The notes beneath the pieces were generated by a model. It was not told the origin of the DNA. It searched no databases and was given only the letters and a program-made list of their open reading frames with translations. A DNA stretch of 62,898 nucleotides, counting the filler, from Parasitella parasitica NRRL 2501 (lineage: Eukaryota > Fungi > Mucoromycota): the NCBI GenBank assembly GCA_025201805.1. It is 4 parts of 4 records of this genome, joined end to end, with 100 filler letters (N's around TTAATTAATTAA, not from the genome) between each part and the next. Parts side by side here need not be neighbours in the genome. Positions count along the whole stretch, not along the records: positions 25,134 to 56,804 come from MU619265.1; 3 more parts are not named here. One strand, 5' to 3'. Of the stretch, positions 1-51,687 are shown in pieces (positions within the stretch are counted from its first letter, which is position 1; each line of letters begins with the position of its first letter). Both the position numbers and the translations under genes were made by a program.

Positions 1-383
1 TTCAACGGGAGATATGTACTAAAAAATAGTTGCGATTTACTTTTTGATGGAATGAGAAGTTAAGAGTATTAAATCTTATGTTAAAGAAACTAATTAAAAC
101 TTCCATTATAATTATTTTTCAGATACTATTTATCTATAGAACTAGTTACTGGTTCCTGAAATATTTAACTCGACTCCAAAAGGAGTGGCCCTCTGCCAAA
201 CGAGAGTTATGCAATTTATACAAAAAAATAGTTTAGTATCATAGTGTATAATACCCTGACAGAGGTATTGAAGAGGAATACAGTAATAAAAGAGCATTGA
301 ATATCTGATTAGCACTTATCAAAAGATTGAGCTCCCGGTAGGGCGACGATGGCCGTCGTGAGCGAAGCGAGCAGGTCAGCTAG
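1..383 (+). mobile_element. Helitron-like 3' terminus (element probably extends beyond the window start)
   Basis: GC-rich hairpin-forming sequence (acgatggccgtcgt; gcgaagc) in AT-rich DNA, followed shortly by CTAG (380-383) and then T. This is the canonical Helitron 3' end. The 5' boundary is not visible. Confidence 0.55.
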
Positions 384-6043: not shown

Positions 6044-8221
6044 TTATTGTAAAGTAAAAAAATGACTAGCATCATGCATCATTGCAAACCACGGGTGAGG
6101 AAACTGATCATAATAACCTACATCAAATTTACCATTTCTTACTTTAAACCTATCGGCCGCTGTTGCAAAGAACGTTGAATCTAAATGTGGTAATTGATGG
6201 CCCTGAGTAGATATAATCACATCTAGCTCTTCCAAGCAAGATTTCATCATTAATCCAGCTTCTTTTGAAATTTGTTTGTTGCGTGATACGGCCAACAATA
6301 TAAGTACATCCAGAGCATGAAAAAAGTGTTTGCTAGCCGATAAAATATAGTTGCCTGCATACAATAACGTGAAAATCAATATCTTTTTACATGTCACTTG
6401 CTTAAAAAAAAAGGGGGTGGGGGGGCACTAAATAGACTTACAAGATTTCGTATCAGCTATAGCTAGTTGGTGGGTTGCATGTATCAGTAGCTGAGCGCTC
6501 TTCAATGATTCACTCAGCGAATGCTGCTGCACCAGGGACAACAGCTGATGTCCCTGATCAGATAATGCTTTCGGCTGCAAGAAGCTAGAATAGATGCTGA
6601 TATTGAGAAAATGATATTGTATGAAATTCACGAGTAGCACAGAATCCGTTGTTTGCTCAATGGCATCATTGCACTTTTTTGCGTCATTCAAGTCATCGCA
6701 AAGCCGTAGTTCTGCTGGTACAGCTGCCGTGTATTCTTTCATTACCTGCTCCATCCTTACGATTGACTCGAAGCTAAACGAGGACGCTTTACCCAATTGG
6801 ATGCGATGAATGTTTGCCTATTATGTATATTTATGCTGTTTAAGCAGCTATATTGTACAATCATGCGCGCTTACACCGTACCAGAAATTTTTTGACAAAG
6901 CTCTGGTTGTGCAGATTGATGATCCAATTCTGTGATTTAACGAATCTCTTTGTTTCGTCGGGTTCATCTGCCGTATACTTCCAAATAGGAAAATGAAACC
7001 CGCTTTTTTCCGTTGAATCGTTTGCAATATAGTCCAGTAATCGACTCATGAGGGCGGATGCTGTCATATGTCGAGTAAACAGCATTTTGTCAATGTCAGT
7101 GATTGGATCTTGGTGTATGCTAAGGGTATAATCGAGAGCAGCATCTTGTTGCTCGGCTGAGCCAGGGACTCGGTATTCAGGGTAATCATTTCTCAAGTCA
7201 ACCAAGATCTGATAAGCCATAGATACCAACTGACGACTTTCTGCAAATCGAAGTGTGATTTGCAGGTATTGCATCAATAAATTGACGGCCATTGCATTTT
7301 CTAATCTTTTCTCGGGCTGATCAAACTGGTCCAGAATGATATTCTTTGCTTTGGCGTAAAAATAGTCGCCCATGTTTCGTCGTTCTCGAGGTGAAAATAG
7401 CAAATGTTGACATGGAGTCGAGCAGACGTATGAACATATAGAAAGCGTAATGAGGTCTGTCAATGGGTCCTGGATGGGCTTCAATTGATCTCGGTAGGAA
7501 TTTTCGTGCACCAGTGGATTGTACACATTGTGGCATCGAAAGTAAATGTCTACCAACTGATCTACAAGTGATTTTGGGTCCAATAGTAGCAAAGAGGGTA
7601 TCAGTAAAGACATGGGCAGTCCATTGGTTTTATCCGTCAGATTCCCTGCCAAGACCTTGAGCGTGAAGGGAATCAGACTGCCAGAGCTTTCTTTTTCAAA
7701 GCTCAAGAGTATCTCGCCATTGCTGTCAGACGATCTGCAGCCGCCGTAATTTATCGGTGACAGATAAGTTACATTTAGATTGAATTGCATTAATTCACTG
7801 ATATTACGGATGCCTGTTTCTATTTGAAAGCTGCCGTTTTGAATTCTAAAACTCCAGTCATGAAACAGACTTTGAATCATCGTGTTTGCTATTTCAGGCA
7901 GGCTATTCTTCAAACGACACCTGTTCAATTGCTCTTGCATGTGGGAAATTGCTTCTTCTAGCTGCTTCACTTGGTTTTGCAACACATAAACGTCTTTATA
8001 CTGGTAAAGTTGATTTGGCTCTGCTTTCTCGTCTTGCCTGCTGGTCGCCTGCTGTTGGCATGGCTTACCAAACTTTTTGCATCGAACACACTCATGATTT
8101 GGGTTGGGACGCACGCATTTTCGGCGCTGCTTACGACATTCTATTGCATATGAATTTTCGAGATACAAAATGCAAACATGAGCAATGATTTACCTGTGCA
8201 AGGGGTATTTCGACCTTTCAT
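6044..8221 (-). CDS. Zn(II)2Cys6 fungal transcription factor with a middle homology region
   Basis: Spliced N-terminus MKGRNTPCT|ECRKQRRKCVRPNPNHECVRCKKFGKPC, followed by LVDIYFRCHNVYNPLVHE. Downstream exons 6428-6796 and 6044-6397. Confidence 0.88.
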
Positions 8222-25133: not shown

Positions 25134-27650
25134 ATGACCGTAGAACCGCGATCTAACTTGGAAAACTTAGCGTTGACTTGGCACTATCTGGCAACAACAC
25201 TGGCTTCCATGTTTTTATTACTAACCATAAAGTTATCAGATGACATCACAAATTTACATATCAGAATTGCATATAATCGATCATAGGCTTCGATATACAG
25301 CAAAATAAACACTGTCTTATGCGCCATAAGAACAGGCATAATCATCGCTATCTGAGCATAACTTTTTTTCCCCTGAACAATATCTCTATCAAAAGTTATC
25401 TGCAAAAACAGTTTTATTTTTCAATATTTATCATAAATATCACTTCTAAGCACCTAATCGGTCGCCCAAATTGCCAGTGGCAAAATTTTTGGAATTTCGG
25501 AGTTTTAAATTTTTAAATTCCGTTATTTTTGAGCTTGACTGTTTTGTTGTTATTGGGCTAGTTTTATTTGAGTTTGTGAAGCTTCTTTTGACACGAAACT
25601 ATACAATTACAAATTTTCGTGAGTATAGTGAACTTGGTATGTATAATATCATTGATTTATCGGAATTAGTTTTGTAAGTGGGATGCACGGTGTGATTTAG
25701 AGAACGGAATGATAGATTGTATCTATTGTCCATGTTCACTTATAAATAGGAAACACGATCCATTAGAATGATATGTTCATAAATTGTTATAGATCAGAAG
25801 TATAAACTGATCATCACTGTCATGAACCTGTCGAGCCTTCAAGCCCAAACAATTATACATCTTGATCTAAAAATATATATCACCTCGTTCTTCCCTAATC
25901 AATCCACATTGCATTCTTGCCTCTCTGATTCACACTGTCATTCTTGCCTTACTCATCCACATTATACTATTGACTTATTGATCCACGATATCCTATTTAC
26001 CTAATTGATTCACGTTATAGTAAATAGTCTAGTTCACATTTCAGTGAACTAGACAGCTCGCAAAAAGTATAAATAGAGGCCATTTTGACCAGCAAAGAAG
26101 AGTTTTCTTCGTCAGATCTCCTCATCGAATTCCCTTATTAAATATCCCTAGCAATCTTCTTATCTTTCTCCACCTTTTCCTTATTAAATCATAGCCTCCT
26201 TATTTGAAATAAACTTCTGCATATCTTCTCTTAGTACTCTGTCCCTGATTATCTAATAAGGCCGTAGATCCCTGATAATCACATAAAAAGAATAATCTCC
26301 GTAAATAGTACGAATATAATGATGTTGGGTTAAAAAAAGATAATAAAAAACCAAAATGTTAACGAGATACGAAAACTTCAAGATACTTTATTTAAGATCG
26401 AAATTGCATCTGCTATTTATACTTTTTACAACTACATAAATTAATGATGACTTATTTAAATTACTAATTGACAAGACTAATTCACAGTGACAATCTACTT
26501 GACAGGGTACGATATGAGGTTATACAGCAAGGGCTACATGTCTGTGATCTGACAGAGCCTTAACCTTTATCCTGGTGCTCAGATCTGTGTTACTTACAGG
26601 AATAACCTTCTTGATTTGAAACAGAGACTTTATTCTCCAATTTACACAAGTGTATCACATCACATCATTGGACAATCTTTTCAATCTTCAATTGAAGTAC
26701 ATAATTGCCATGATCTCCTGTGTCTATAATTATGATGGCAGATCAACTTAATCCCATGCCCCTCTCTAGCACAACAGCCTAGAAAAAATTAGTGCATTTT
26801 TTGTTCGTCTATGTATCTGAAAAGTACTTACTCAAATACATAACAAACTTGAAGTGGAATTGACTAGATTCCGATCATAAAATTTTATCTTCCTCCCAAT
26901 AATAGCAACTAGGATTACAAAAAATAAGTAAGCAGCATTGATCAGATACGACATATGTCAAAATAGCATGTTGTGCCACTGATGTGTCAATTTCCCAACC
27001 GGAAGTCAAACTCAAGTAAACTCAATCCTGAACACAATTCAGGAACATATCCCAATGGATCATGTTCCTTATTTATAACTCAACATGACATGTTCATGGA
27101 CAATAGATACAATCTATTGTTCCATTCTCTAAATCACACCATGTCTCACACTTATATCTTATCCTCCCATCAGTCCACTTAGATTCACTAGTGTATAAAC
27201 CATCATTTTTTCCATGTAATACACGAGATCTTTACCTGATTAATTCACAACTGTTTTATTTGAATAATTTCTCATTCTGATAAATCAGCCACTATTCAAC
27301 CTAAAAGGAACAATTTATGAAACTAAGAAAGCTTCCTGGTCGTAAGTATATAAACATGTTTAAAGTACCCTTCTTGATCCATTGTTAGATCAACAACGTC
27401 AATAAATAAGTCAATGTTCACATTCACGTAAGATTAGGATAGCTACGGTAGAATTATATTCTATTAGTCTGATGAATGGTCATTCCTATTCAACATAAGT
27501 AGAATGATATTATACTATTAGCCCAGAACAACCGATTAGAGATTTTTATGCCAGATACTCTTTTAAATAAACAACTATCATTCTCACATTAAATAAGATT
27601 ATTGGTTCTACATGTTTTTGATACATGCATGAAAAACTTTTTTCCCAACA
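25134..27650. repeat. Gene-free AT-rich region, probably degenerate retroelement/LTR debris
   Basis: No credible ORF; LTR-like TATA/polyA motifs; adjacent to identified LTRs. Family not identified. Confidence 0.3.
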
Positions 27651-40553: not shown

Positions 40554-41042
40554 TTTAATCCGATATTTTAGAAAAGGGAGGGTTGATTAGTGTGTAGCAG
40601 AAAGAAATAAAGATGAATGTTGAAGAAAGGTTAAAAACAGAAAAAAGGAGAAAAAGGCTCTTTTTTGTTTCCTCATAACAACAACAACAATGATTTGATC
40701 AGTAACAATAAACAATAAGATGCACTCGGGTTAACTTTCACAGGTTAAAGCAAAAAGAATAATAGTGCTACATACCCAAAATGCTTTTGCAAATCAAGAG
40801 ATCTGTGGTTCAGTGTGACTAAAGAGGCAGGCCCAAGTAAGCCCCTCCCTGCTGACAACTCCACATATCCACACTACATCACAAGACAGTCTAAAGAACA
40901 CATCATAGCAGGCTCTAAATGGGTTTGCTGCCATTGTTGTCTTGCGTTGTTTTGAATAAGCGCCAAAAACAGATTCTTGACAATACAGTGAATTGCGTTT
41001 GAAAATAGAATTTTTGGGAAATAAAAATAGAGAAAATTTTTC

Positions 41043-41105
41043 TTAAGCAATAGAAATTTTTATTAAGCAGTAGAAATTTTTATTAAGCAATAGATATTTT
41101 TTTTT
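41043..41105 (+). repeat. Subterminal 20-bp tandem repeats (mirror copy at 50503-50565)
   Basis: ttaagca(a/g)tagaaattttta repeated 3 times; possible transposase-binding sites (inference). Confidence 0.75.
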
Positions 41106-41335
41106 TAACAATAGAGTTTCTTGAGATCAATAGAAAAAAATTACTAGAAAAAAAAACCAACAGTAGAATTACTGTAAACCAGTGGGTTAATACAGAAATA
41201 AATATCTCAAGAGTTAGAATCGCATACATTTCCTGAGAGCTTTTCCAAATCTGGCTGTGGTGTTTTCTTAATGATATAAATACTCTGCACATTCTTATAC
41301 TTTTTATAAAATTAACCTATTTATTATTACTTGCA

Positions 41336-42652
41336 ATGTACACCACAACCAGATTCTACCATTATCTACCCTCTGGCGAATTCGTTTGTGATGAAGAACC
41401 TGAATACCAGCCAAAACAAGATGGAGCGGCTATTAAGTCGTTGTACCAGATGGAAGGTATTCCAGAGAATGAGTCTTCGTCCGAGGATGAAGATGATAGT
41501 CATTTTAATACAGCAGTGGCTATGGAAGAAATTGGTTTAGAGGCAACGCCTCTACCTAATATGATTTGGACACCAACTAAGTATAAACCAAAAGATGTTG
41601 CTCAATTTATTTCTCTGTTGCAAAACAAAAATTTAAAGGTTTCTAAAGCTGCAAAGGAAGCTGGCATTGGATTAAAAGCTGCTTATAAGTTCAAAGATCA
41701 ATGGAAAAAAAATGGTGGAACAATCTTACCTGGTTACAAACCAGCCTCTGAAGTTAAACGTAAAGGAAATAACGTGAAATTGACAGAGGAACATTCACAA
41801 TATTTACATGCATTTATTGAAAAGCATCCAACTTGTATTGTGAAAGATGCTACAGAATCCCTTTGTGAGACTTTTCAAGGCTTAACAATTAACGAGTCCA
41901 CTGTATATCGTCACATTACTGAAAAGCTTGAGTTTACTTTGACTCGTACACAAGCAAGGTTTGTAAACAGAAATTCTGATGATACGCTTGAACAACGTAG
42001 ACAATTTATTGAAGATATCGATGCAATGAATGAAGAAAACTTTTACAAAAAAAGATGCATTTTCGTGGATGAAAGTGGGTTCAAGAAAAACATGGTACGT
42101 CCTGTGGCGTGGTCTAAAAAAGGTGAGCCTGTAGAAGTGGATGTAGAAGCAGAAGGAACTAATCTGAGTATCCTGGGTTGTATGTCAGCCTATGGCTTGA
42201 TTGCTCTTTCGCAACAAGTTCCAAAATCAAGCAGAAAGAAACAAAAAACTCCTCTTGGTACAAAAAGAGCCTTGCCTCATGGAACTAATTCGTCACACTT
42301 TGTGTTGTTTGTAGAAGAGATCATTTCTGTTTTGAACAAGATTGGATTAAAGGATATGTACATAGTGATGGACAACGCCTCCATTCACAAAACACCAGAA
42401 GTCCTAAAAGCAATAAGGGATAGTGGACATTATGCTTTATTTTTACTCCCCTATTCGCCAATGCTGAATCCTATTGAAGAATGCTGGGCAAAAATCAAGT
42501 TAGTAGTTCGCAAAACTCCACTTGGAAAGAACGAAATGATTGCTGATAGAATTGAAGAAGCAGCAAAAACAGTTACAGCAAAAAACTGTAGAGGTTGGAT
42601 TCGACATTCCCAAAGACAATTTCCAAAATGTCGCAACATGGAAAGGTTATAA
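41336..42652 (+). CDS. Tc1/mariner DD34E transposase, left-arm copy (438 aa)
   Basis: FVDES, VMDNA and LLPYSPMLNPIE (D34E); HTH VSKAAKEAGIGLKAAYKF. Confidence 0.96.
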   Translation: MYTTTRFYHYLPSGEFVCDEEPEYQPKQDGAAIKSLYQMEGIPENESSSEDEDDSHFNTAVAMEEIGLEATPLPNMIWTPTKYKPKDVAQFISLLQNKNLKVSKAAKEAGIGLKAAYKFKDQWKKNGGTILPGYKPASEVKRKGNNVKLTEEHSQYLHAFIEKHPTCIVKDATESLCETFQGLTINESTVYRHITEKLEFTLTRTQARFVNRNSDDTLEQRRQFIEDIDAMNEENFYKKRCIFVDESGFKKNMVRPVAWSKKGEPVEVDVEAEGTNLSILGCMSAYGLIALSQQVPKSSRKKQKTPLGTKRALPHGTNSSHFVLFVEEIISVLNKIGLKDMYIVMDNASIHKTPEVLKAIRDSGHYALFLLPYSPMLNPIEECWAKIKLVVRKTPLGKNEMIADRIEEAAKTVTAKNCRGWIRHSQRQFPKCRNMERL

Positions 42653-43364
42653 ATGTTGTATTTGGGGGTGGTCTACATTTATATAAATAATAAATGTACA
42701 CTATTAAAAGAATAAATTCAAATATTAGTATAAAATAATACAAAGAAACATAAAAGTTTCATATAACGAATTGTCTAGTATGAAATCCAATTCTATAAAC
42801 GTTGTTGCACAAGTTAAAACCGATAAATAGTAGACAATAACAAGCATAAAGCTAATTGTAACTATTTAATCCAATATAAATAAATGATACATAAAGGATG
42901 ATTATTTGATAAGAATAATTCTTACACAAGATTAGCTACCTTGTTGTAAGATTTGAACAGGTTATGATTAGAGAATAACATCACTTTATGACATTTACAC
43001 ATAAAAATATATTACTTTGACATATGGTCAAGTAATAGGTTTAATGTATGAATATGTTTTAGGATACATTATTCCAACACCAAGATTGCAATAAAGAAAC
43101 AATACTTGTAGATAAAGTTTAATCTCAGATTCAATGGCTGGATTTAACTTTATAAAACACAACTGTTCACTTTAACTTGCACATGCAGCAACAATGAATA
43201 ATATCCCAAAGGGGAACATTAATCAATATGGAATCACAAATACAAACTCCATACTATCAAGCCTAATTTCGAAATCATATAAATAGGAAAGATTTATTTT
43301 ATTCAAAAAGTTCTTTAGTCTATTTTTACTTAATAAAATCTTTTAAGTTTGATCTCGTTAATTT

Positions 43365-43931
43365 TTATCTTTTAATATTTAACTCAAGAATCGATAAATA
43401 CCACACCTCCATCAAGCTATCGACTGCATCTTGTCTTGTTGCCTGTGGACGTTCATCGAAAAACTGCACGAGATGCCTCTTATGCTCTTCTTTTAGTTGT
43501 GATGGGGCTCGATTTATTTTATTTGTCTGTTTCTCGTAAATGTCCCAGGCCGGGTCTTCTCTAAGTTTTTTGCCCATAACTGAGCAGTGCGAATATTTAT
43601 ACCTGCTTTTCGTGCAGAAGGAGCTGCTTTCAAAAGCTTGATTTTATGAAAGTAATAAAATACTGCTTTTTGCTTGTCCGAATAATTGTTGTAAGTCCCC
43701 TTTGCTACATCTTTCATGTGTACTTCTTCTACCAAATCCTCCATCTCTTGGTCGAAATTATTTGCAGTTTCCTCAAGCTGGAAAGCATGTTCGTTCACTG
43801 ACCGATACCTGCTCATATTGGTGAGTGACAATATTATATGGATCAATATAGTCTTGAAGATCCATCGCTTCGATTCCTTGCTCATTCGTGATGTTTCCAT
43901 GACCATCCTCAAAGAAAAAAGGGATATCCAT
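43365..43931 (-). pseudogene. Truncated, frameshifted N-terminus of a second Tc1 transposase family (left arm)
   Basis: MDIPFFFEDGHG...YSDKQKAVF...AGINIRTAQLW/KKLREDPAWDIY...QATRQDAVDSL aligns by eye with the N-terminus of the 12995-14320 transposase. Two frameshifts; no DDE domain. Confidence 0.85.
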
Positions 43932-44283
43932 AATGATTGTTTTCAGAGAAAAAAGATTATCGAAAAGGAAATACGTACTTTAAGATCGCAACAAGAGCAA
44001 TTTGAGCTAAACAAAAGCGTAATTTGGGCATGACAGAAACGAAAATGCGTCAGTTGACGAAGACGAGGACGAAACTGCGGTAACAAACTCCAAGAGCCGC
44101 GCTTCATTTTCTTTTTTAAAATATCTCTAACTCCAAAAGGCAGTTTTTTAAATTGTGTTGAATCAAAAGTCCCTCACTCTCACTCCAATTGTGACGAGAG
44201 TTATTAGTTAACTAAGTTCAGTTTGACTAGAGAGGTGCGCTGCATAGGCACGTCTAAAGTTGATTGCGGAATGCTGTGCAACG

Positions 44284-44836
44284 TTTATTACCTGGTCATT
44301 TTTTACGTGGTCATTTACGTGGTCATTTTTTATCTGGTCATATTTTACGTGGTCATTTACCTGGTCGTTTTTTATCTGGTCATTTTTNNNNNNNNNNNNN
44401 NNNNNNNNNNNNNNNNNNNNNNNNNNNNNNNNNNNNNNNNNNNNNNNNNNNNNNNNNNNNNNNNNNNNNNNNNNNNNNNNNNNNNNNNNNNNNNNNNNNN
44501 NNNNNNNNNNNNNNNNNNNNNNNNNNNNNNNNNNNNNNNNNNNNNNNNNNNNNNNNNNNNNNNNNNNNNNNNNNNNNNNNNNNNNNNNNNNNNNNNNNNN
44601 NNNNNNNNNNNNNNNNNNNNNNNNNNNNNNNNNNNNNNNNNNNNNNNNNNNNNNNNNNNNNNNNNNNNNNNNNNNNNNNNNNNNNNNNNNNNNNNNNNNN
44701 NNNNNNNNNNNNNNNNNNNNNNNNNNNNNNNNNNNNNNNNNNNNNNNNNNNNNNNNNNNNNNNNNNNNNNNNNNNNNNNNNNNNNNNNNNNNNNNNNNNN
44801 NNNNNNNNNNNNNNNNNNNNNNTTTTTACGTGGTCA
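44284..44836 (+). repeat. Tandem array of 12/15-bp units T(3-6)A(C/T)(G/C)TGGTCA, interior unresolved (N gap 44388-44822)
   Basis: Seven units before the gap and one after; ends about 85 bp upstream of the ATG at 44923. Confidence 0.85.
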
Positions 44837-44922
44837 TTATCGTTGCCCTTTCTTTTCACTTTTGCTTCTTTTCTCTTTTGCACTCTATTTCCTCTTCTAT
44901 TTCTATTTTTTTCCCCTTTGCT

Positions 44923-46216
44923 ATGTCGACCATTACAAGAGAACGAGCACTTTGTATGTTTTTTTACAAACCATACAATGAAGAAAATGTAATCAGTCTA
45001 GCCAAGATACTTGAGAAGGAAAACTTAGAAATATGCTACACAGACGAACCTAATGAACCCGTATTATTACATTCCTTATCAATAATCCACAATCCTTTTC
45101 GTTACCGAACTTATATCTGTAAAAGGACACTAGAACCAACAACAGCTAATGAAAAAACGTGCGCTTGTAAGCTTTTTTTTTAAAAAAAAAAAGAACTTTT
45201 TCTTATAGTTTTATTTGTTTAGTAAACTCTGCCCAAATCGTACTACTGCTAAACACAGTATATTTACCTTATGATCCTGAAAATAGCGACCTATATGAAA
45301 ACAAAATTGTGACTATGAAACAAATTTACTGCACAGCATTAAATTATTCTGATGACTTGGATACCAAAAACTTGAATTCCTTTATAAAATGGTGCTCATA
45401 TAAAAAGCTTGACTTTTTGCAAGTGGGAACAAAAAGAAAGATTGATGAAGTTGACGACAAAAAAACGACAAGGACAAGATCTCTATATGTGTTAAAAGAT
45501 GACTATCTTGGTAAGGACCCTTCAAAATACCTAAATAAGTGGCCACTAAGATATAGCTTTGTAGATGACGTTGCTTATAAGATTAACGACTATCTTCCAT
45601 CATACCAAAATTATATAAAGAAACTTAAGGAGGAGGACCATACAATTATAGGATATATTAGAAAGTCGCCTGGAAAAGAGCCTGATGATAGAAGACGCCA
45701 ACTTTTAGAAGCTATGAGCTTAAATCTCAAAGAAAGATCGTTGGTAGATGTGGTTTTTGCTTCTCCTTGTTCTCAAGCTTCTGATCCAATGGAAAGTAGA
45801 GATAAAAAACAACATGCATTATTGGATCAGATTGGTGTTGCGGGAAGCACTCAAGGTGAAGCCTATCATGTATTTACATATTTAATAAAATATTAATCCT
45901 TACTTCTTGTAGACTTAATGAAATTTATAGCTTCAAAAAACAAAGTTTGTTTGGTCACTTTGGATTATGCCGGCCTCAGCACAAACTGTTTAGACTTGAA
46001 GGAATTCTTAAGGTAAAATAAAAAACAATAAAAAAAGAAAAAGGTAGCTTCTAATAATATTCTAATAGTAAAAAGACTCAAATCAAAAAAATTATAGTTG
46101 ATCTCTTTCCTTATACAAACGAAATGACTGTGTATGATTGTAACCAGCTATTAGAAGATCCTGGACGTTTAAAGGTTTTCAATTGTAGAAAAGCTTTTTA
46201 CCGAAGATCCAAGTAG
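44923..46216 (+). CDS. Four-exon, 374-aa protein with a C-terminal serine-recombinase (resolvase/invertase)-like domain
   Basis: Exons 44923-45166, 45223-45855, 45913-46012 and 46069-46216. GT..AG introns of 56, 57 and 56 nt keep the frame open. Motifs IIGYIRKS (cf. resolvase GYxRVS) and VCLVTLDYAGLSTN. Confidence 0.72.
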
Positions 46217-46526
46217 TTTGCATGCAGTTAAATACTATAGTCAATAGTACTTCTATACAATGTGATAATATCCCATAGTTCTTGATTCCTCCTTCAGACT
46301 AATACCTACTTTAACTATTGTTTTCCACACTATTCTGTTTCATCCAGTCCTACCTCTCAATTATGTGTAAATTATAAACTAAAAAATAAACAGATTCATA
46401 AGTTAATACAGTTTTACAAAAAGACCCTGCTAGGAATATATGAATTTATTTCATTTTTCAAAAAGTAACCTCGCTTTAATGTTTTCCATTTTCTTTTCAG
46501 TGAGTACAGCTGCGAAATTCTCCGTA

Positions 46527-46775
46527 TTAAGAAACAAAATTGCTACTGTATAGATTGCTTGATTTGTTATTCAATTGGGCAGGATAAAGATGGTATTTCA
46601 AAGACTTAGACTTTATTGTAGCAAGCATACATAATACGGGTTCATTAGGTTCGTCTGTGTAGCATATTTCTAAGTTTTCCTTCTCAAGTATCTTGGCTAG
46701 ACTGATTACATTTTCTTCATTGTATGGTTTGTAAAAAAACATACAAAGTGCTCGTTCTCTTGTAATGGTCGACAT
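46527..46775 (-). CDS. 82-aa ORF sharing its first 48 codons with the recombinase-like gene, then diverging
   Basis: MSTITRERALCMFF...EPNEPVL then CMLATIKSKSLKYHLYPAQL...*. Expression unknown. Confidence 0.4.
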   Translation of the reverse strand: MSTITRERALCMFFYKPYNEENVISLAKILEKENLEICYTDEPNEPVLCMLATIKSKSLKYHLYPAQLNNKSSNLYSSNFVS

Positions 46776-46861
46776 AGCAAAGGGGAAAAAAATAGAAATA
46801 GAAGAGGAAATAGAGTGCAAAAGAGAAAAGAAGCAAAAGTGAAAAGAAAGGGCAACGATAA

Positions 46862-47324
46862 TGACCACGTAAAAANNNNNNNNNNNNNNNNNNNNNNNNN
46901 NNNNNNNNNNNNNNNNNNNNNNNNNNNNNNNNNNNNNNNNNNNNNNNNNNNNNNNNNNNNNNNNNNNNNNNNNNNNNNNNNNNNNNNNNNNNNNNNNNNN
47001 NNNNNNNNNNNNNNNNNNNNNNNNNNNNNNNNNNNNNNNNNNNNNNNNNNNNNNNNNNNNNNNNNNNNNNNNNNNNNNNNNNNNNNNNNNNNNNNNNNNN
47101 NNNNNNNNNNNNNNNNNNNNNNNNNNNNNNNNNNNNNNNNNNNNNNNNNNNNNNNNNNNNNNNNNNNNNNNNNNNNNNNNNNNNNNNNNNNNNNNNNNNN
47201 NNNNNNNNNNNNNNNNNNNNAAAAATGACCAGATAAAAAACGACCAGGTAAATGACCACGTAAAATATGACCAGATAAAAAATGACCACGTAAATGACCA
47301 CGTAAAAAATGACCAGGTAATAAA
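46862..47324 (-). repeat. Mirror copy of the 12/15-bp tandem array (N gap 46876-47220)
   Basis: Reverse complement of 44284-44836. Confidence 0.85.
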
Positions 47325-47676
47325 CGTTGCACAGCATTCCGCAATCAACTTTAGACGTGCCTATGCAGCGCACCTCTCTAGTCAAACTGAACTTAGTTAA
47401 CTAATAACTCTCGTCACAATTGGAGTGAGAGTGAGGGACTTTTGATTCAACACAATTTAAAAAACTGCCTTTTGGAGTTAGAGATATTTTAAAAAAGAAA
47501 ATGAAGCGCGGCTCTTGGAGTTTGTTACCGCAGTTTCGTCCTCGTCTTCGTCAACTGACGCATTTTCGTTTCTGTCATGCCCAAATTACGCTTTTGTTTA
47601 GCTCAAATTGCTCTTGTTGCGATCTTAAAGTACGTATTTCCTTTTCGATAATCTTTTTTCTCTGAAAACAATCATT

Positions 47677-48243
47677 ATGGATATCCCTTTTTTCTTTGAG
47701 GATGGTCATGGAAACATCACGAATGAGCAAGGAATCGAAGCGATGGATCTTCAAGACTATATTGATCCATATAATATTGTCACTCACCAATATGAGCAGG
47801 TATCGGTCAGTGAACGAACATGCTTTCCAGCTTGAGGAAACTGCAAATAATTTCGACCAAGAGATGGAGGATTTGGTAGAAGAAGTACACATGAAAGATG
47901 TAGCAAAGGGGACTTACAACAATTATTCGGACAAGCAAAAAGCAGTATTTTATTACTTTCATAAAATCAAGCTTTTGAAAGCAGCTCCTTCTGCACGAAA
48001 AGCAGGTATAAATATTCGCACTGCTCAGTTATGGGCAAAAAACTTAGAGAAGACCCGGCCTGGGACATTTACGAGAAACAGACAAATAAAATAAATCGAG
48101 CCCCATCACAACTAAAAGAAGAGCATAAGAGGCATCTCGTGCAGTTTTTCGATGAACGTCCACAGGCAACAAGACAAGATGCAGTCGATAGCTTGATGGA
48201 GGTGTGGTATTTATCGATTCTTGAGTTAAATATTAAAAGATAA
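47677..48243 (+). pseudogene. Truncated Tc1 transposase N-terminus (right-arm mirror copy)
   Basis: Same sequence as 43365-43931, including both frameshifts. Confidence 0.85.
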
Positions 48244-48955
48244 AAATTAACGAGATCAAACTTAAAAGATTTTATTAAGTAAAAATAGACTAAAGAACTT
48301 TTTGAATAAAATAAATCTTTCCTATTTATATGATTTCGAAATTAGGCTTGATAGTATGGAGTTTGTATTTGTGATTCCATATTGATTAATGTTCCCCTTT
48401 GGGATATTATTCATTGTTGCTGCATGTGCAAGTTAAAGTGAACAGTTGTGTTTTATAAAGTTAAATCCAGCCATTGAATCTGAGATTAAACTTTATCTAC
48501 AAGTATTGTTTCTTTATTGCAATCTTGGTGTTGGAATAATGTATCCTAAAACATATTCATACATTAAACCTATTACTTGACCATATGTCAAAGTAATATA
48601 TTTTTATGTGTAAATGTCATAAAGTGATGTTATTCTCTAATCATAACCTGTTCAAATCTTACAACAAGGTAGCTAATCTTGTGTAAGAATTATTCTTATC
48701 AAATAATCATCCTTTATGTATCATTTATTTATATTGGATTAAATAGTTACAATTAGCTTTATGCTTGTTATTGTCTACTATTTATCGGTTTTAACTTGTG
48801 CAACAACGTTTATAGAATTGGATTTCATACTAGACAATTCGTTATATGAAACTTTTATGTTTCTTTGTATTATTTTATACTAATATTTGAATTTATTCTT
48901 TTAATAGTGTACATTTATTATTTATATAAATGTAGACCACCCCCAAATACAACAT

Positions 48956-50272
48956 TTATAACCTTTCCATGTTGCGACATTTTGGAAATTGTCTTTGGGA
49001 ATGTCGAATCCAACCTCTACAGTTTTTTGCTGTAACTGTTTTTGCTGCTTCTTCAATTCTATCAGCAATCATTTCGTTCTTTCCAAGTGGAGTTTTGCGA
49101 ACTACTAACTTGATTTTTGCCCAGCATTCTTCAATAGGATTCAGCATTGGCGAATAGGGGAGTAAAAATAAAGCATAATGTCCACTATCCCTTATTGCTT
49201 TTAGGACTTCTGGTGTTTTGTGAATGGAGGCGTTGTCCATCACTATGTACATATCCTTTAATCCAATCTTGTTCAAAACAGAAATGATCTCTTCTACAAA
49301 CAACACAAAGTGTGACGAATTAGTTCCATGAGGCAAGGCTCTTTTTGTACCAAGAGGAGTTTTTTGTTTCTTTCTGCTTGATTTTGGAACTTGTTGCGAA
49401 AGAGCAATCAAGCCATAGGCTGACATACAACCCAGGATACTCAGATTAGTTCCTTCTGCTTCTACATCCACTTCTACAGGCTCACCTTTTTTAGACCACG
49501 CCACAGGACGTACCATGTTTTTCTTGAACCCACTTTCATCCACGAAAATGCATCTTTTTTTGTAAAAGTTTTCTTCATTCATTGCATCGATATCTTCAAT
49601 AAATTGTCTACGTTGTTCAAGCGTATCATCAGAATTTCTGTTTACAAACCTTGCTTGTGTACGAGTCAAAGTAAACTCAAGCTTTTCAGTAATGTGACGA
49701 TATACAGTGGACTCGTTAATTGTTAAGCCTTGAAAAGTCTCACAAAGGGATTCTGTAGCATCTTTCACAATACAAGTTGGATGCTTTTCAATAAATGCAT
49801 GTAAATATTGTGAATGTTCCTCTGTCAATTTCACGTTATTTCCTTTACGTTTAACTTCAGAGGCTGGTTTGTAACCAGGTAAGATTGTTCCACCATTTTT
49901 TTTCCATTGATCTTTGAACTTATAAGCAGCTTTTAATCCAATGCCAGCTTCCTTTGCAGCTTTAGAAACCTTTAAATTTTTGTTTTGCAACAGAGAAATA
50001 AATTGAGCAACATCTTTTGGTTTATACTTAGTTGGTGTCCAAATCATATTAGGTAGAGGCGTTGCCTCTAAACCAATTTCTTCCATAGCCACTGCTGTAT
50101 TAAAATGACTATCATCTTCATCCTCGGACGAAGACTCATTCTCTGGAATACCTTCCATCTGGTACAACGACTTAATAGCCGCTCCATCTTGTTTTGGCTG
50201 GTATTCAGGTTCTTCATCACAAACGAATTCGCCAGAGGGTAGATAATGGTAGAATCTGGTTGTGGTGTACAT
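48956..50272 (-). CDS. Tc1/mariner DD34E transposase, right-arm copy (438 aa)
   Basis: Protein identical to that of 41336-42652. Confidence 0.96.
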   Translation of the reverse strand: MYTTTRFYHYLPSGEFVCDEEPEYQPKQDGAAIKSLYQMEGIPENESSSEDEDDSHFNTAVAMEEIGLEATPLPNMIWTPTKYKPKDVAQFISLLQNKNLKVSKAAKEAGIGLKAAYKFKDQWKKNGGTILPGYKPASEVKRKGNNVKLTEEHSQYLHAFIEKHPTCIVKDATESLCETFQGLTINESTVYRHITEKLEFTLTRTQARFVNRNSDDTLEQRRQFIEDIDAMNEENFYKKRCIFVDESGFKKNMVRPVAWSKKGEPVEVDVEAEGTNLSILGCMSAYGLIALSQQVPKSSRKKQKTPLGTKRALPHGTNSSHFVLFVEEIISVLNKIGLKDMYIVMDNASIHKTPEVLKAIRDSGHYALFLLPYSPMLNPIEECWAKIKLVVRKTPLGKNEMIADRIEEAAKTVTAKNCRGWIRHSQRQFPKCRNMERL

Positions 50273-51687
50273 TGCAAGTAATAATAAATAGGTTAATTTT
50301 ATAAAAAGTATAAGAATGTGCAGAGTATTTATATCATTAAGAAAACACCACAGCCAGATTTGGAAAAGCTCTCAGGAAATGTATGCGATTCTAACTCTTG
50401 AGATATTTATTTCTGTATTAACCCACTGGTTTACAGTAATTCTACTGTTGGTTTTTTTTTCTAGTAATTTTTTTCTATTGATCTCAAGAAACTCTATTGT
50501 TAAAAAAAAAATATCTATTGCTTAATAAAAATTTCTACTGCTTAATAAAAATTTCTATTGCTTAAGAAAAATTTTCTCTATTTTTATTTCCCAAAAATTC
50601 TATTTTCAAACGCAATTCACTGTAAATGAATTATACGTTTGTTGTTGATGTGTACATCTATAGCACCGTTGTTTTTTCAGATGATTAAGTATGTACGATA
50701 AATGGCAGTATGCTACTAGTAAAACCATTAAACCAAAAACTGATTACTGCTATATGTGCCTAGCCAAATCATGGAAGGCAAGTATATCTGATACTGATCG
50801 CATGACATTTCCACATTTTGTTGCTTATGTTTTTGATACATGCGATACTAACGTTGATGAGGGCATGAGCTATACCACATATATATGAAAATTGGTACAT
50901 ACTAAATATGTATGCATTTGCAAAATAAAGCCCATGCATTACTGCCATCGCTTTTGAACGCGTGATATTTAAAATAATTAGAATGACTGCAACCCAATTC
51001 TGTAAAATGCTTTGTAGATGCACTTTCTAGCATTAAACCAAGATAAGGAACGCACATGTGTTTATGTATACTCGATGCACTTTAACACAGTGCTTTTCTT
51101 TGGTTTCTATTCCGGAATAAAACGATTTACAGCTTTTCGTTTTCTGGTGTTCATTGCTTTTCTTTAACAATATCTATCTTGCTGAAGAATAAAACATTAA
51201 CAGTATATTACTGTAATGGCATTGTAACAAGAGATATTGTATTTTCAAATGGGTTTATTACACTTCAGCATACTTTATTAATCTACTTGTTTAAACTTGA
51301 AGCCCTTCTTTTCTGCATCTTTGAAAGCTCTTTGTTTGTGGATCAGTAACACTTGGAAGCAAAATACCTTGCTATTATGTGTTATATCTTAGACTAATGC
51401 AGGTCCTTTTATCTCTATATAAACAGTCGCAAGGCTACAGTGCATGTCGATTGGTAGCGCTTTAATAGGTGCATCAAGTTTTGTTCCAACTATGTCGAAT
51501 AGGATATTATATTGCTGTTTGCTCTGGATAATAATTGAGCTTGACAGTCGAATTTGCCAAATTGTTTCGTTTTAAAATTCTGACAGCTTATCCACTTCTC
51601 CCCAAAACACCATGGGTTAGGTATCTGGGTACCAATACCTTGAAGAGAGAAAGGGAGAAAAAAAAACACGCTCTCTTTCAGTTAAAT

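Follow-up and report, generated by a model that had tools for sequence, protein, structure and literature searches.

A spliced Parasitella parasitica gene with a predicted serine-recombinase fold lies in an inverted-repeat unit that looks like an undescribed eukaryotic mobile element

Serine recombinases carry out site-specific strand exchange via a 5'-phosphoserine intermediate. They are almost entirely prokaryotic and viral, and the few recorded eukaryotic cases are recognisable relatives of IS607 that are regarded as recent arrivals. In the fungus Parasitella parasitica NRRL 2501, a gene with spliceosomal introns appears to encode a protein of this kind, which raises the questions of whether the gene is intact, whether its product has the fold and active site of a serine recombinase, and what sort of unit surrounds it. 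We addressed these questions in a window of 62,898 nucleotides, filler included (four parts of four records of GenBank assembly GCA_025201805.1, joined end to end; positions 25,134 to 56,804 come from MU619265.1), and all coordinates count along that window. Our main reading, to which we give a probability of roughly 0.6, is that the locus is a selfish, probably mobile element whose main cargo is the gene with the predicted fold, here called gene A.

Gene A is an intact, transcribed and spliced gene

44923..46216, plus strand: gene A, 356 aa (open frame, splice sites, spliced RNA contigs, intron-less paralogues)
44923-45166, 45223-45510, 45565-45855, 45913-46012 and 46069-46216, plus strand: exons of gene A
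45167-45222, 45511-45564, 45856-45912 and 46013-46068, plus strand: introns of gene A

The first-pass annotation had divided this stretch into four exons (44923-45166, 45223-45855, 45913-46012 and 46069-46216), which together read through 374 codons to a stop in one open frame and leave introns of 56, 57 and 56 nt, all GT..AG. Splicing was visible in RNA-derived contigs of two sequencing runs, one 100% identical to the window (X7) and the other about 98 to 99% identical (X17). In X7, introns 45167-45222 and 45856-45912 are spliced out and there is a break at 46013-46068, consistent with intron removal; X17 covers only 45167-45222 among these three. A fourth in-frame intron, 45511-45564 (54 nt, GT..AG), lies inside exon 2 of the four-exon model and is spliced out in both runs. 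The three proposed introns were upheld in this way and the proposed length was not, because removal of the 54-nt intron leaves a mature product of 356 aa rather than 374. This intron also accounts for the split matches of paralogues to exon 2, which come as two segments, and for the absence of the 18 corresponding residues from public homologues.

Intron 45856-45912 is absent from paralogues L004 and L005, and intron 46013-46068 from paralogue L012, with continuous reading across each predicted junction. In the RNA-derived contigs the gene A transcript extends to about 46395 at its 3' end. The window's protein keeps all family-invariant residues, and dN/dS values of 0.28 and 0.25 show that gene A is under purifying selection (dN/dS of about 0.3).

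Predicted domains and the putative active site

44923..45166, plus strand: exon 1, N-terminal domain of about 65 aa, alpha-alpha-beta-beta-alpha
45223..45644, plus strand: winged-helix domain (probably DNA-binding) and linking helix, interrupted by intron 45511-45564
45645..46216, plus strand: predicted serine-recombinase-fold catalytic domain (predicted structure, structural and profile alignments)
45645-45668, plus strand: IIGYIRKS motif, with the putative nucleophile Ser codon at 45666-45668

Structures were predicted for public homologues, with P0006 (42% identical over exon 2) standing in for the window protein. Sequence searches used the window protein exon by exon, and full-length public homologues (P0006 and others) took the place of the spliced protein. 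The model of P0006 residues 1 to 190 (pLDDT 92.8) has a predicted winged helix at residues 86 to 180, N-terminal to the catalytic domain. Its best match is the RFX DNA-binding domain (Z 6.0, 73/76 residues) and the remaining matches are also winged helices, which points to a probable role in DNA binding. The predicted order of protein A is a small N-terminal domain, the winged helix and the serine-recombinase-fold domain, in keeping with the IS607-like layout, DNA-binding before catalytic, that had been proposed.

For the C-terminal domain of a full-length homologue, AlphaFold2 returned a model with pLDDT 94.3 and pTM 0.89, in which the fold elements of the superfamily are present: strand 1, helix A, strand 2, helix B, strand 3, helix D and strand 4. 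Beyond strand 4 the model has short helices, one strand and no long helix E, and the last 10 residues have a pLDDT of about 66. The long helix E of serine recombinases is their dimer/tetramer interface. The best Foldseek matches in the PDB were all serine recombinases (probability 0.97 to 1.00). In an exhaustive VIA-align search of 48,161 PDB chains, serine recombinases took ranks 1 to 14 (Z 9.8 to 5.7), and the next rows were unrelated folds with Z of 5.5 or less. Individual Z scores were 9.8 for TP901-1 integrase, 9.1 for gamma-delta resolvase, 9.0 for Tn3 resolvase, and 8.6 and 7.0 for the IS607-like TnpA structures 3lhk and 6dgb; gamma-delta resolvase superposed with an rmsd of 2.7 Å over 102 residues (model 22..166 on chain 1..114). 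An ESM Atlas shape search led to PF00239 clusters, as did the Atlas's own independent model of the same homologue protein, and the top matches in a viral structure library were giant-virus and phage serine recombinases. TM-scores were moderate, 0.5 to 0.59, in the Foldseek PDB and ESM Atlas comparisons. The AlphaFold and Foldseek comparison proposed in the first-pass annotation, run here on the homologue, thus placed serine-recombinase catalytic domains on top, and the suggested fold came out best in every structure library tried (PDB, ESM Atlas and viral). We regard a serine-recombinase catalytic fold as confidently predicted for the C-terminal domain on the basis of the homologue.

The sequence searches gave a different picture. 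The profile comparison with PF00239 that had been suggested returned no match at E ≤10 in the four exon translations or in eight full-length homologues, for which Pfam as a whole gave only sub-threshold noise, and no match at E ≤1 in the six-frame translated Parasitella parasitica genome. An exon-2 family profile found no recombinase among its matches to PDB sequences. A family profile of the C-terminal domain, used in hmmsearch against PDB sequences, reached Tn3 and gamma-delta resolvase weakly (E 0.16 and 0.2, respectively). By hhalign, the family aligned to a set of 17 bacterial and phage catalytic domains with E 6.6e-4 and a probability of 27%; against single sequences it gave 24 columns with Gin (4.7% probability) and no alignment with TP901-1. 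Membership in the serine recombinases is therefore a matter of structure prediction, and the sequence profiles are not significant.

Within this predicted fold, G-Y-x-R-K-S lies in register with Y6/R8/S10 by structural ranges, hmmsearch and hhalign, which bears out the Y-x-R-x-S motif read earlier from the window. The hmmsearch alignment sets the family's GYaRkS on GYARVS of Tn3/gamma-delta resolvase. Among 150 family representatives the motif is conserved at G (137/142), Y (141/143), R (140/144), K (139/144) and S (132/143), and further Arg, Ser and Asp positions around the pocket are conserved as well. Other family-conserved motifs of gene A are VDVVFAS, VCLVTLDYAGLSTN and a C-terminal FNCR...RSK. 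In the hhalign comparison with the 17 recombinases, Y/R/S align, S..S..R-D falls on D36..S39..R45, and LDfaGlTT falls on LDRLgRdt. The family's motif B reads S-x-x-S-x-A...R-D, with R (115/127) at R45, a Ser near S39 and a conserved Ser (118/133) at the D36 position, all in this 27%-probability profile alignment. Motif C, L-D-[FYH]-A-G-[LI]-[ST]-T on L-D-R-L-G-R-D-T, keeps D67, G70 and T73; across the family R68 is replaced by Phe/Tyr/His and R71 by Leu/Ile, and the window protein has the scaffold as LDYAGLST, without arginines.

The atypical active site noted earlier, with the DRLxR arginines gone, is thus a property of the family. In the homologue alignment that had been suggested, the motif Ser and the Arg of Y-x-R are conserved and the R68/R71 arginines are replaced. 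Tn3 resolvase has six crucial residues, D36, R68 and R71 among them, and their mutation nearly abolishes activity (PMC2794168); of the six, the mucoralean family keeps Y6, R8 and S10, and D36, R68 and R71 are replaced. Judged from the aligned sequences, the active site is non-canonical, and any chemistry would need other basic residues, such as the conserved Lys beside the Ser, the Arg at the position of Q19, the Arg at the position of R45 or the Arg residues of the C-terminus.

We asked whether this likeness could be generic, in that an unrelated three-layer alpha/beta domain with another phosphate or nucleotide function might have acquired YxRxS by chance. The weak sequence scores, the moderate TM-scores and the fact that VIA-align Z values of 7 to 10 are possible for common arrangements would fit such convergence. 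However, serine recombinases occupy all of the 14 top ranks, and unrelated folds follow only after a clear gap; several searches that started from two different structure predictors concur; the order and register of motifs A, B and C are the same whether the alignment is structural, HMM or profile-profile; and the domain sits beside a winged helix and between inverted repeats, as with recombinases. Given this agreement, we consider convergence very improbable.

Inverted arms, repeat arrays and gene B

45068..46630, no strand assigned: unique core, 1563 bp, single-copy in the Parasitella parasitica genome
40984..45067, plus strand: left arm, perfect inverted repeat, 4084 nt including an N run
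46631..50624, minus strand: right arm, mirror of the left, with the gene B promoter, codons 1-48 and a Tc1-like ORF at 48956-50272
44284..44838, plus strand: left array of 12/15-nt repeats, unit ACGTGGTCATTT, with variable T runs and an N run inside (44388-44822)
46860..47331, minus strand: right array, inverted copy of the left, with an N run inside (46876-47220)
46527..46775, minus strand: gene B, 82-aa ORF (spliced minus-strand contig in X17, conservation, dN/dS)

Gene A lies in a unit of about 2 kb made up of an array, gene A, the convergent gene B and a second, inverted array. In the left arm are a Tc1/mariner-like ORF (41336-42652), the short-repeat array and, for gene A, the promoter, the 5' UTR and codons 1-48. 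About 85 nt separate the end of this array from the gene A ATG, and about 15 nt separate it from the first transcribed base in the RNA contigs (contig start 44852). The palindrome in the window ends in Tc1/mariner-type termini, TA|CAGTG. Paralogues and units of other genera have the same layout, each with a repeat unit of its own; the arrays consist of tandem repeats of 10-22 nt that are specific to the element and lie less than about 130 nt upstream of both start codons, and the arms range from 200 bp up to 4 kb across copies. Within a unit the arms are 93 to 100% identical, and between units exon 1 is 30 to 47% identical; the repeat arms evolve in concert.

Gene B starts in the right arm, and its product consists of the N-terminal domain alone. 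Over the first 48 codons it is identical to gene A, after which comes a conserved tail of its own, C..L..IKS....YHLYP. The transcript has a 91-nt intron in its 3' UTR (46379-46469) and runs antisense to exon 4 of gene A, as numbered in the four-exon model, and to the gene A 3' UTR, reaching at least 46085. Gene B is conserved in paralogues, in L038 and in Hesseltinella, and with a dN/dS of 0.32 it is under purifying selection.

We considered whether the abrupt inner end of the repeat at codon 48 might be a crossover site and set this idea aside. The Hesseltinella repeat does not reach the ATG, and gene B there still keeps its own conserved tail, so the edge is better explained by gene conversion limited by the divergence of A and B. 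Two identical Hesseltinella copies sit inside a larger duplicated, repeat-rich block. A 1154-aa fusion frame on contig C37 was rejected because an N run had been read as X.

It is also conceivable that the palindrome is an artefact of assembly, the gene a dead remnant and the architecture without meaning. The two 4-kb arms of the window are 100% identical with N runs of unequal length, and the contig is only 31.7 kb long, as an artefact might be. Against this, the layout of A, B and inverted arrays recurs at many loci of the genome and in gap-free independent assemblies of other genera, and genes A and B are both transcribed, spliced and under purifying selection. An artefact is, in our view, scarcely credible.

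A candidate mobile element and its relation to known systems

A search at E ≤1e-3 yielded 950 cluster representatives of the family, and the named members are all from Mucorales genera. The Parasitella parasitica genome has 33 family matches, several of them decayed. Literature searches turned up neither a serine recombinase nor a foldback element from Mucorales, and this large family has no name and has been seen in no other group. Its size, its introns and their gain or loss between paralogues agree with the long residence in eukaryotes that had been suggested from the introns of the window. A 1283-bp core with 98% identity occurs in GCA_025716855.1 with unrelated flanks, and three host genes there are 67 to 81% identical; near-identical words were found in sequencing runs under at least 10 organism labels. 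Some members in other genera are solitary, with no arrays and no gene B, and these could be domesticated or immobile. New here is a large, intron-bearing, expressed and selected family that is linked to serine recombinases by structure prediction alone and has an element architecture of its own, inverted arrays plus a partner gene.

We propose how such a unit might work. In IS607, TnpA carries its winged helix at the N-terminus and binds to multiple subterminal repeats (PMC6188088), and by analogy the winged helix of protein A would bind the repeat arrays. Such binding would bring the two inverted ends together, and the serine-recombinase domain could then break and rejoin DNA via the Ser of G-Y-x-R-K-S, with inversion, excision or integration as the outcome. 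Protein B has the N-terminal domain in common with protein A and probably modulates that protein in the manner of truncated transposase inhibitors, and binding of the arrays beside both transcription starts would probably autoregulate the unit. Array binding, catalysis, the type of reaction and mobility are what we infer from these parallels. No target-site duplication, empty site, excised circle or alternative orientation was found at units whose arrays contain N runs and whose junction sequences are independent of orientation; inversion of the core is unreadable from contigs because both orientations give identical junctions.

Tentatively, and with slightly less than even confidence, we go further and suggest that the units form an undescribed eukaryotic DNA-transposon superfamily native to Mucorales. 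Its serine-recombinase site would be rewired, with other basic residues near the Ser replacing the motif C arginines; it would be guided to arrays through winged-helix sites, controlled by a truncated partner with the N-terminal domain, and passed horizontally between species.

A different account takes protein A to be catalytically dead, its fold serving as an oligomerisation or DNA-binding scaffold. A and B would then be array-binding regulators or silencing or partition-like factors in a unit spread by gene conversion, host recombination or Tc1-like hitch-hiking, or the family would be domesticated. The replacement of three residues crucial in Tn3 resolvase speaks for this account. Arrays directly upstream of both transcription starts would suit operators, and the solitary genes without arrays and the Tc1/mariner-type ends of the window's palindrome fit it too. 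However, G-Y-x-R-K-S, Ser included, is kept in more than 90% of the 150 representatives together with the pocket Arg, Ser and Asp, which a mere scaffold would not be expected to conserve, and the family is multi-copy, decaying and shared horizontally, as autonomous mobile elements typically are. We therefore judge the dead derivative unlikely, although it is the alternative we take most seriously, and keep the selfish, probably mobile element as our reading.

The consequences differ between the two. If the protein is active, eukaryotic transposons would gain a class based on serine recombinases, the fold would be able to work without the canonical R68/R71 pair, and Mucorales would be a source of compact recombinases adapted to eukaryotes, with a natural range of many orthogonal site specificities, because each subfamily has its own repeat unit. 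If it is inactive, the family would clearly illustrate how a recombinase fold can become a repeat-binding protein. In either case the units, whose arrays abut N runs in the Parasitella parasitica assembly, explain recurrent assembly gaps and orphan contigs of about 2 kb in mucoralean genomes.

Of the known systems, the IS607 family (TnpA of IS607, IS1535 and ISC1926) shares the winged helix N-terminal to the catalytic domain, a structural match of the catalytic domains (3lhk and 6dgb, above) and multiple short repeats near the ends. In IS1535 these repeats nucleate a multi-dimer paired-end complex; for the mucoralean arrays, protein binding would be by analogy. Unlike IS607 relatives, the mucoralean family has no detectable sequence similarity to them and no Pfam match, is missing the R68 and R71 arginines and has an extra N-terminal domain. 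Its ends are long inverted tandem arrays, whereas IS607 is without terminal inverted repeats; there is no TnpB/Fanzor partner, the sole second gene being the 82-aa gene B; and gene A has four spliceosomal introns. The structural scores do not favour IS607 over other serine recombinases.

Small serine recombinases (gamma-delta/Tn3, Sin, Gin/Hin) and large integrases (TP901-1, phiC31, Bxb1) share the predicted fold (Z 9.8 to 7.8), Y-x-R-x-S after strand 1 in the same register, the S..R of motif B as placed by the low-probability profile alignment, and the L-D-x-x-G-x-x-T scaffold of motif C, and Hin and Gin also have a gene between inverted repeats. Their DNA-binding domain is C-terminal, whereas that of the mucoralean protein is N-terminal. 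The mucoralean family further differs from them in its replacements (D36 by Ser, R68 by an aromatic residue, R71 by Leu/Ile), in about 17 residues inserted between motif B and helix B, in having no predicted long helix E, and in its eukaryotic host and the introns of gene A.

The IS607-like recombinases of eukaryotes and giant viruses are likewise serine-recombinase genes in eukaryotes or their viruses; those of giant viruses were the best viral structural matches. Their hosts are Acanthamoeba, some Ascomycetes, Basidiomycetes, Stramenopiles, Mimiviridae and phycodnaviruses (PMC3673617, PMC3627910), and Mucorales are not among the hosts listed in these two surveys. Those recombinases can be recognised from their similarity to prokaryotic IS607 and are regarded as recent transfers, whereas the mucoralean family is not recognisable from sequence, bears introns and, at the size given above, has been observed only in Mucorales.

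Two further systems resemble the unit in its repeats. Foldback elements also have arms made largely of short tandem subrepeats, but no related protein. The yeast 2-micron plasmid (FLP/FRT, 599-bp inverted repeats) keeps a recombinase gene and long inverted repeats identical within one element, much as the gene with the recombinase fold is associated here with long inverted repeats identical within a unit. FLP, however, is a tyrosine recombinase on a plasmid, and the mucoralean units are chromosomal, on contigs with host genes.

Gene models and transcripts

The MU619265.1 part is an entire 31.7-kb contig of the 32.8-Mb genome. Besides ordinary host genes (a protein kinase, a PP2C and a UDP-glucose dehydrogenase), it has a palindrome around the serine-recombinase-like gene (gene A). 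Within every arm lie gene A codons 1-48 together with the promoter and 5' UTR, 12/15-nt repeats (unit ACGTGGTCATTT) in an array broken by an N run and, farther outward, a Tc1/mariner-like DDE_3 ORF; the 4-kb arm extent in the window derives from a gapped assembly.

Features of the locus
40984-45067, left arm, perfectly complementary to the right arm
46631-50624, right arm, perfectly complementary to the left arm
45068-46630, unique core holding gene A, 1563 bp
44923-45166, 45223-45855, 45913-46012, 46069-46216 (+), gene A exons as first annotated; GT..AG introns of 56, 57 and 56 nt
46775 to 46527 (-), convergent short gene (gene B), 82 aa; residues 1-48 are those of gene A, the tail is its own
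41336-42652, mirrored at 48956-50272, DDE_3 ORF, 438 aa, Tc1/mariner-like (regions 40984-44200 and 47400-50624)
43514-43912, mirrored at 47696-48094, helix-turn-helix-like ORF on the strand opposite to the DDE_3 ORF

The first-pass annotation had joined the four exons into one 374-codon open frame. Public RNA-derived contigs were aligned on 44823-46875; being assembled contigs, they speak to splicing, not to expression levels. A 1160-nt contig from run X7, 100% identical, aligned as 45038-45166, 45223-45509, 45564-45853, 45911-46008 and 46067-46395, and one from run X17, under another organism label, as 45037-45166, 45223-45509 and 45564-45852. The three proposed introns are spliced out in these contigs. 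A fourth, in-frame GT..AG intron of 54 nt (45511-45564) is also removed, so the open frame stands but the product is 356 aa. This intron explains why paralogues align to exon 2 as two pieces with stops in between and why annotated homologues lack 18 residues of exon 2. Intron 45856-45912 is absent from two paralogues (L004 and L005) and intron 46013-46068 from a third (L012), the genomic DNA reading straight through the predicted junction in each case. At the sequence level, these paralogues, each short of one intron, are independent genomic support for the splice junctions.

Because the right arm also holds the promoter and the 48 codons, gene B is driven from that arm. It is transcribed, since X17 contains a spliced minus-strand contig (46661-46470 and 46378-46085, 91-nt intron), in which the gene B 3' UTR runs antisense across the last exon of gene A. 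The gene A (+) and gene B (-, spliced from 46470 to 46378) transcripts overlap convergently by about 300 nt (46085-46395), and this overlap could be a source of double-stranded RNA; the Mucorales are a fungal order with active RNA interference. The gene B signature C..L..IKS....YHLYP is kept in the relative L038 and in Hesseltinella, where the repeat spans the arrays and outer flank and leaves out exon 1. This makes gene B a conserved gene rather than a repeat by-product; its dN/dS is 0.32.

Predicted fold and active site

The PF00239 check that the first-pass annotation had proposed gave nothing: Pfam had no match in the gene A exons or full-length homologues, a Resolvase profile search of the window's genome found none, and an exon-2 profile against PDB sequences returned no recombinase among its matches. 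The structures described here are all predictions on homologues. Using an alignment of 149 family members, we folded the C-terminal domain of P0006, a public full-length homologue 42% identical over exon 2 (pLDDT 94.3, pTM 0.89). Serine recombinases filled the best eleven Foldseek rows against the PDB (probability 0.97-1.00) and ranks 1-14 of an exhaustive structural alignment of 48,161 chains. In the latter, Z was 9.8 for TP901-1, 9.4 for a large serine integrase, 9.3 for Sin, 9.1 for gamma-delta resolvase (rmsd 2.7 over 102 residues), 9.0 for Tn3, and 8.6 and 7.0 for IS607-like proteins, with unrelated folds from Z 5.5 down. A shape search of the ESM Atlas and the Atlas's own independent P0006 model both returned PF00239 clusters, and giant-virus and phage serine recombinases ranked first in a viral library. 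With serine recombinases atop every structure library, the predicted fold of this homologue agrees with the likeness originally proposed.

A second model, of P0006 residues 1-190 (pLDDT 92.8), has two domains. Residues 1-65, the part common to protein B, are predicted to form a small alpha-alpha-beta-beta-alpha domain, and residues 86-180 a winged helix, matched best by the RFX DNA-binding domain (Z 6.0, 73/76 residues) and next by RFX5 and the phage P4 origin-binding domain; Foldseek gave only weak winged-helix matches. In IS607, the winged helix sits at the N-terminus of TnpA, which assembles the paired-end complex by binding multiple subterminal repeats (PMC6188088). As in IS607, a predicted DNA-binding domain precedes the catalytic domain, the layout first suggested from the sequence.

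Three comparisons agree on the motif register. In the structural ranges, model residue 22 lies opposite chain residue 1, which sets G26-Y27-x-R29-x-S31 on G5-Y6-x-R8-x-S10 (Tn3/gamma-delta resolvase numbering). In hmmsearch, the domain profile gave the same Y/R/S alignment with Tn3 (E 0.16) and gamma-delta resolvase (E 0.2). An hhalign comparison with 17 catalytic domains, drawn from five bacterial genomes, phage Mu and TP901-1 (E 6.6e-4, probability 27%), again aligned Y/R/S, and placed S..S.A....R-D on D36..S39..R45 and L-D-[FYH]-A-G-[LI]-[ST]-T on L-D-R-L-G-R-D-T. Across 150 representatives, 132/143 have the Ser, 141/143 the Y, 140/144 the YxRxS Arg and 139/144 the Lys preceding the Ser, bearing out the Ser conservation that the first-pass annotation had made a test of its claim.

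In Tn3 resolvase, mutating Y6, R8, S10, D36, R68 or R71 strongly lowers cleavage and recombination (PMC2794168). The mucoralean family retains Y6, R8 and S10, whereas D36, R68 and R71 are replaced; because these are the last three of the six crucial residues, the active site was aptly called atypical. The missing arginines make the chemistry of the gene A protein uncertain, and the principal rival to a working recombinase is a catalytically dead, array-binding derivative. Candidate substitutes include the conserved Lys, the R-D arginine, an Arg aligned with Q19, and the C-R....R-S-K of the C-terminus.

Unit architecture and signs of movement

A search of the window's genome with exon 2 gave 33 matches, some of them open and some full of stops. 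Paralogue units of about 2 kb have two oppositely oriented copies of exon 1, one on each side of the gene body, and arms of 200-330 bp. Arms are 92-100% identical inside one unit and exon 1 just 30-47% identical between units, a pattern of concerted evolution of the arms. Beyond them lie arrays of short tandem repeats, frequently adjoining N runs, whose unit sequence varies among units (for example CTTGTCCATTAC, TGGACCAACC, a 22-mer, a 41-mer, and AACTCGGGCTTC in Hesseltinella). The gap-free L038 has arms of 226 bp with 15 repeats on one side and 1 on the other. Gene A dN/dS is 0.28 for the window versus L038 and 0.25 versus L028, a locus in GCA_025716855.1.

Searching 1.84 billion cluster representatives with the exon-2 profile yielded 950 proteins (E <= 1e-3). 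All named members are 'hypothetical protein' of mucoralean genera (Hesseltinella, Halteromyces, Mucor, Rhizopus, Gongronella, Cunninghamella, Sporodiniella and Benjaminiella), and the G-Y-x-R-x-S, R-S, S, R-D, G-x-T-Q and A-G positions are invariant across 11 full-length members. Our literature search found no published description of the family. Known eukaryotic-side serine recombinases are sequence-recognisable IS607 relatives hosted by Amoebozoa, Ascomycetes, Basidiomycetes, Stramenopiles and giant viruses (PMC3673617, PMC3627910).

The gene A unit is most likely a mucoralean selfish element. Its main protein would be a divergent, winged-helix-bearing serine recombinase, arrays of putative binding sites would form its ends, and gene B would provide an N-domain-only partner. 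A 1283-bp core piece that takes in introns and 3' UTR has 98% identity to L028, where the flanks are unrelated and the arms absent.

Core-only copy
L028:9901-11183 (GCA_025716855.1), 98% identical to window 45131-46407, without arms, arrays and most of exon 1

The three host genes adjoining this copy have 67-81% identity to their window-genome counterparts, and element synonymous divergence between the window and L028 is 0.044. From these sequence comparisons, the copy looks like a recent horizontal arrival, truncated since. Runs under at least ten organism labels contain words nearly identical to those of the stretch, and Hesseltinella has two copies with 99.6% identity. In assembled contigs, where N runs interrupt the arrays and junctions are equal in both orientations, we found neither termini nor target duplications, and no empty site or alternative orientation.

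At its outer edges, the 9.6-kb palindrome reads TA followed by CAGTGAATTGCG (TA, then CAGTG...), like Tc1/mariner termini with a TA target. Because of these edges and the Tc1/mariner-like element in each arm, a Tc1-type transposase could move the entire palindrome as a composite. Just inside the palindrome ends, near the Tc1-like terminus, is a 20-nt tandem repeat (AAATTTTTATTAAGCAATAG-like) of three and a half copies (41034-41104 and 50504-50574).

Several assemblies have roughly 2-kb contigs made up of one unit that stops within its own arrays: one contig is of the window's genome (C326, L023, 2407 bp), and others carry P0050 (2026 bp) and P0008 (2088 bp). The arrays evidently disrupt short-read assemblies, and an episomal form is conceivable. 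Solitary annotated family members in Benjaminiella, Halteromyces and Mucor saturninus (L041, L042 and L043) lack gene B, inverted arms and clear arrays within 5 kb, and may be domesticated or immobilised copies. Adjoining the two 99.6%-identical units of Hesseltinella vesiculosa is a block (L039/L040:7480-9840) with its own inverted repeats (7483-7712 versus 9829-9600) and 61-nt and 22-nt tandem arrays, which suggests nested or clustered repeat elements. Compared with window 44825-44838, the array in X17 is apparently much shorter, unique upstream sequence seeming to meet the last repeats, with one additional 15-nt unit at 44830, so strains may differ in array length.
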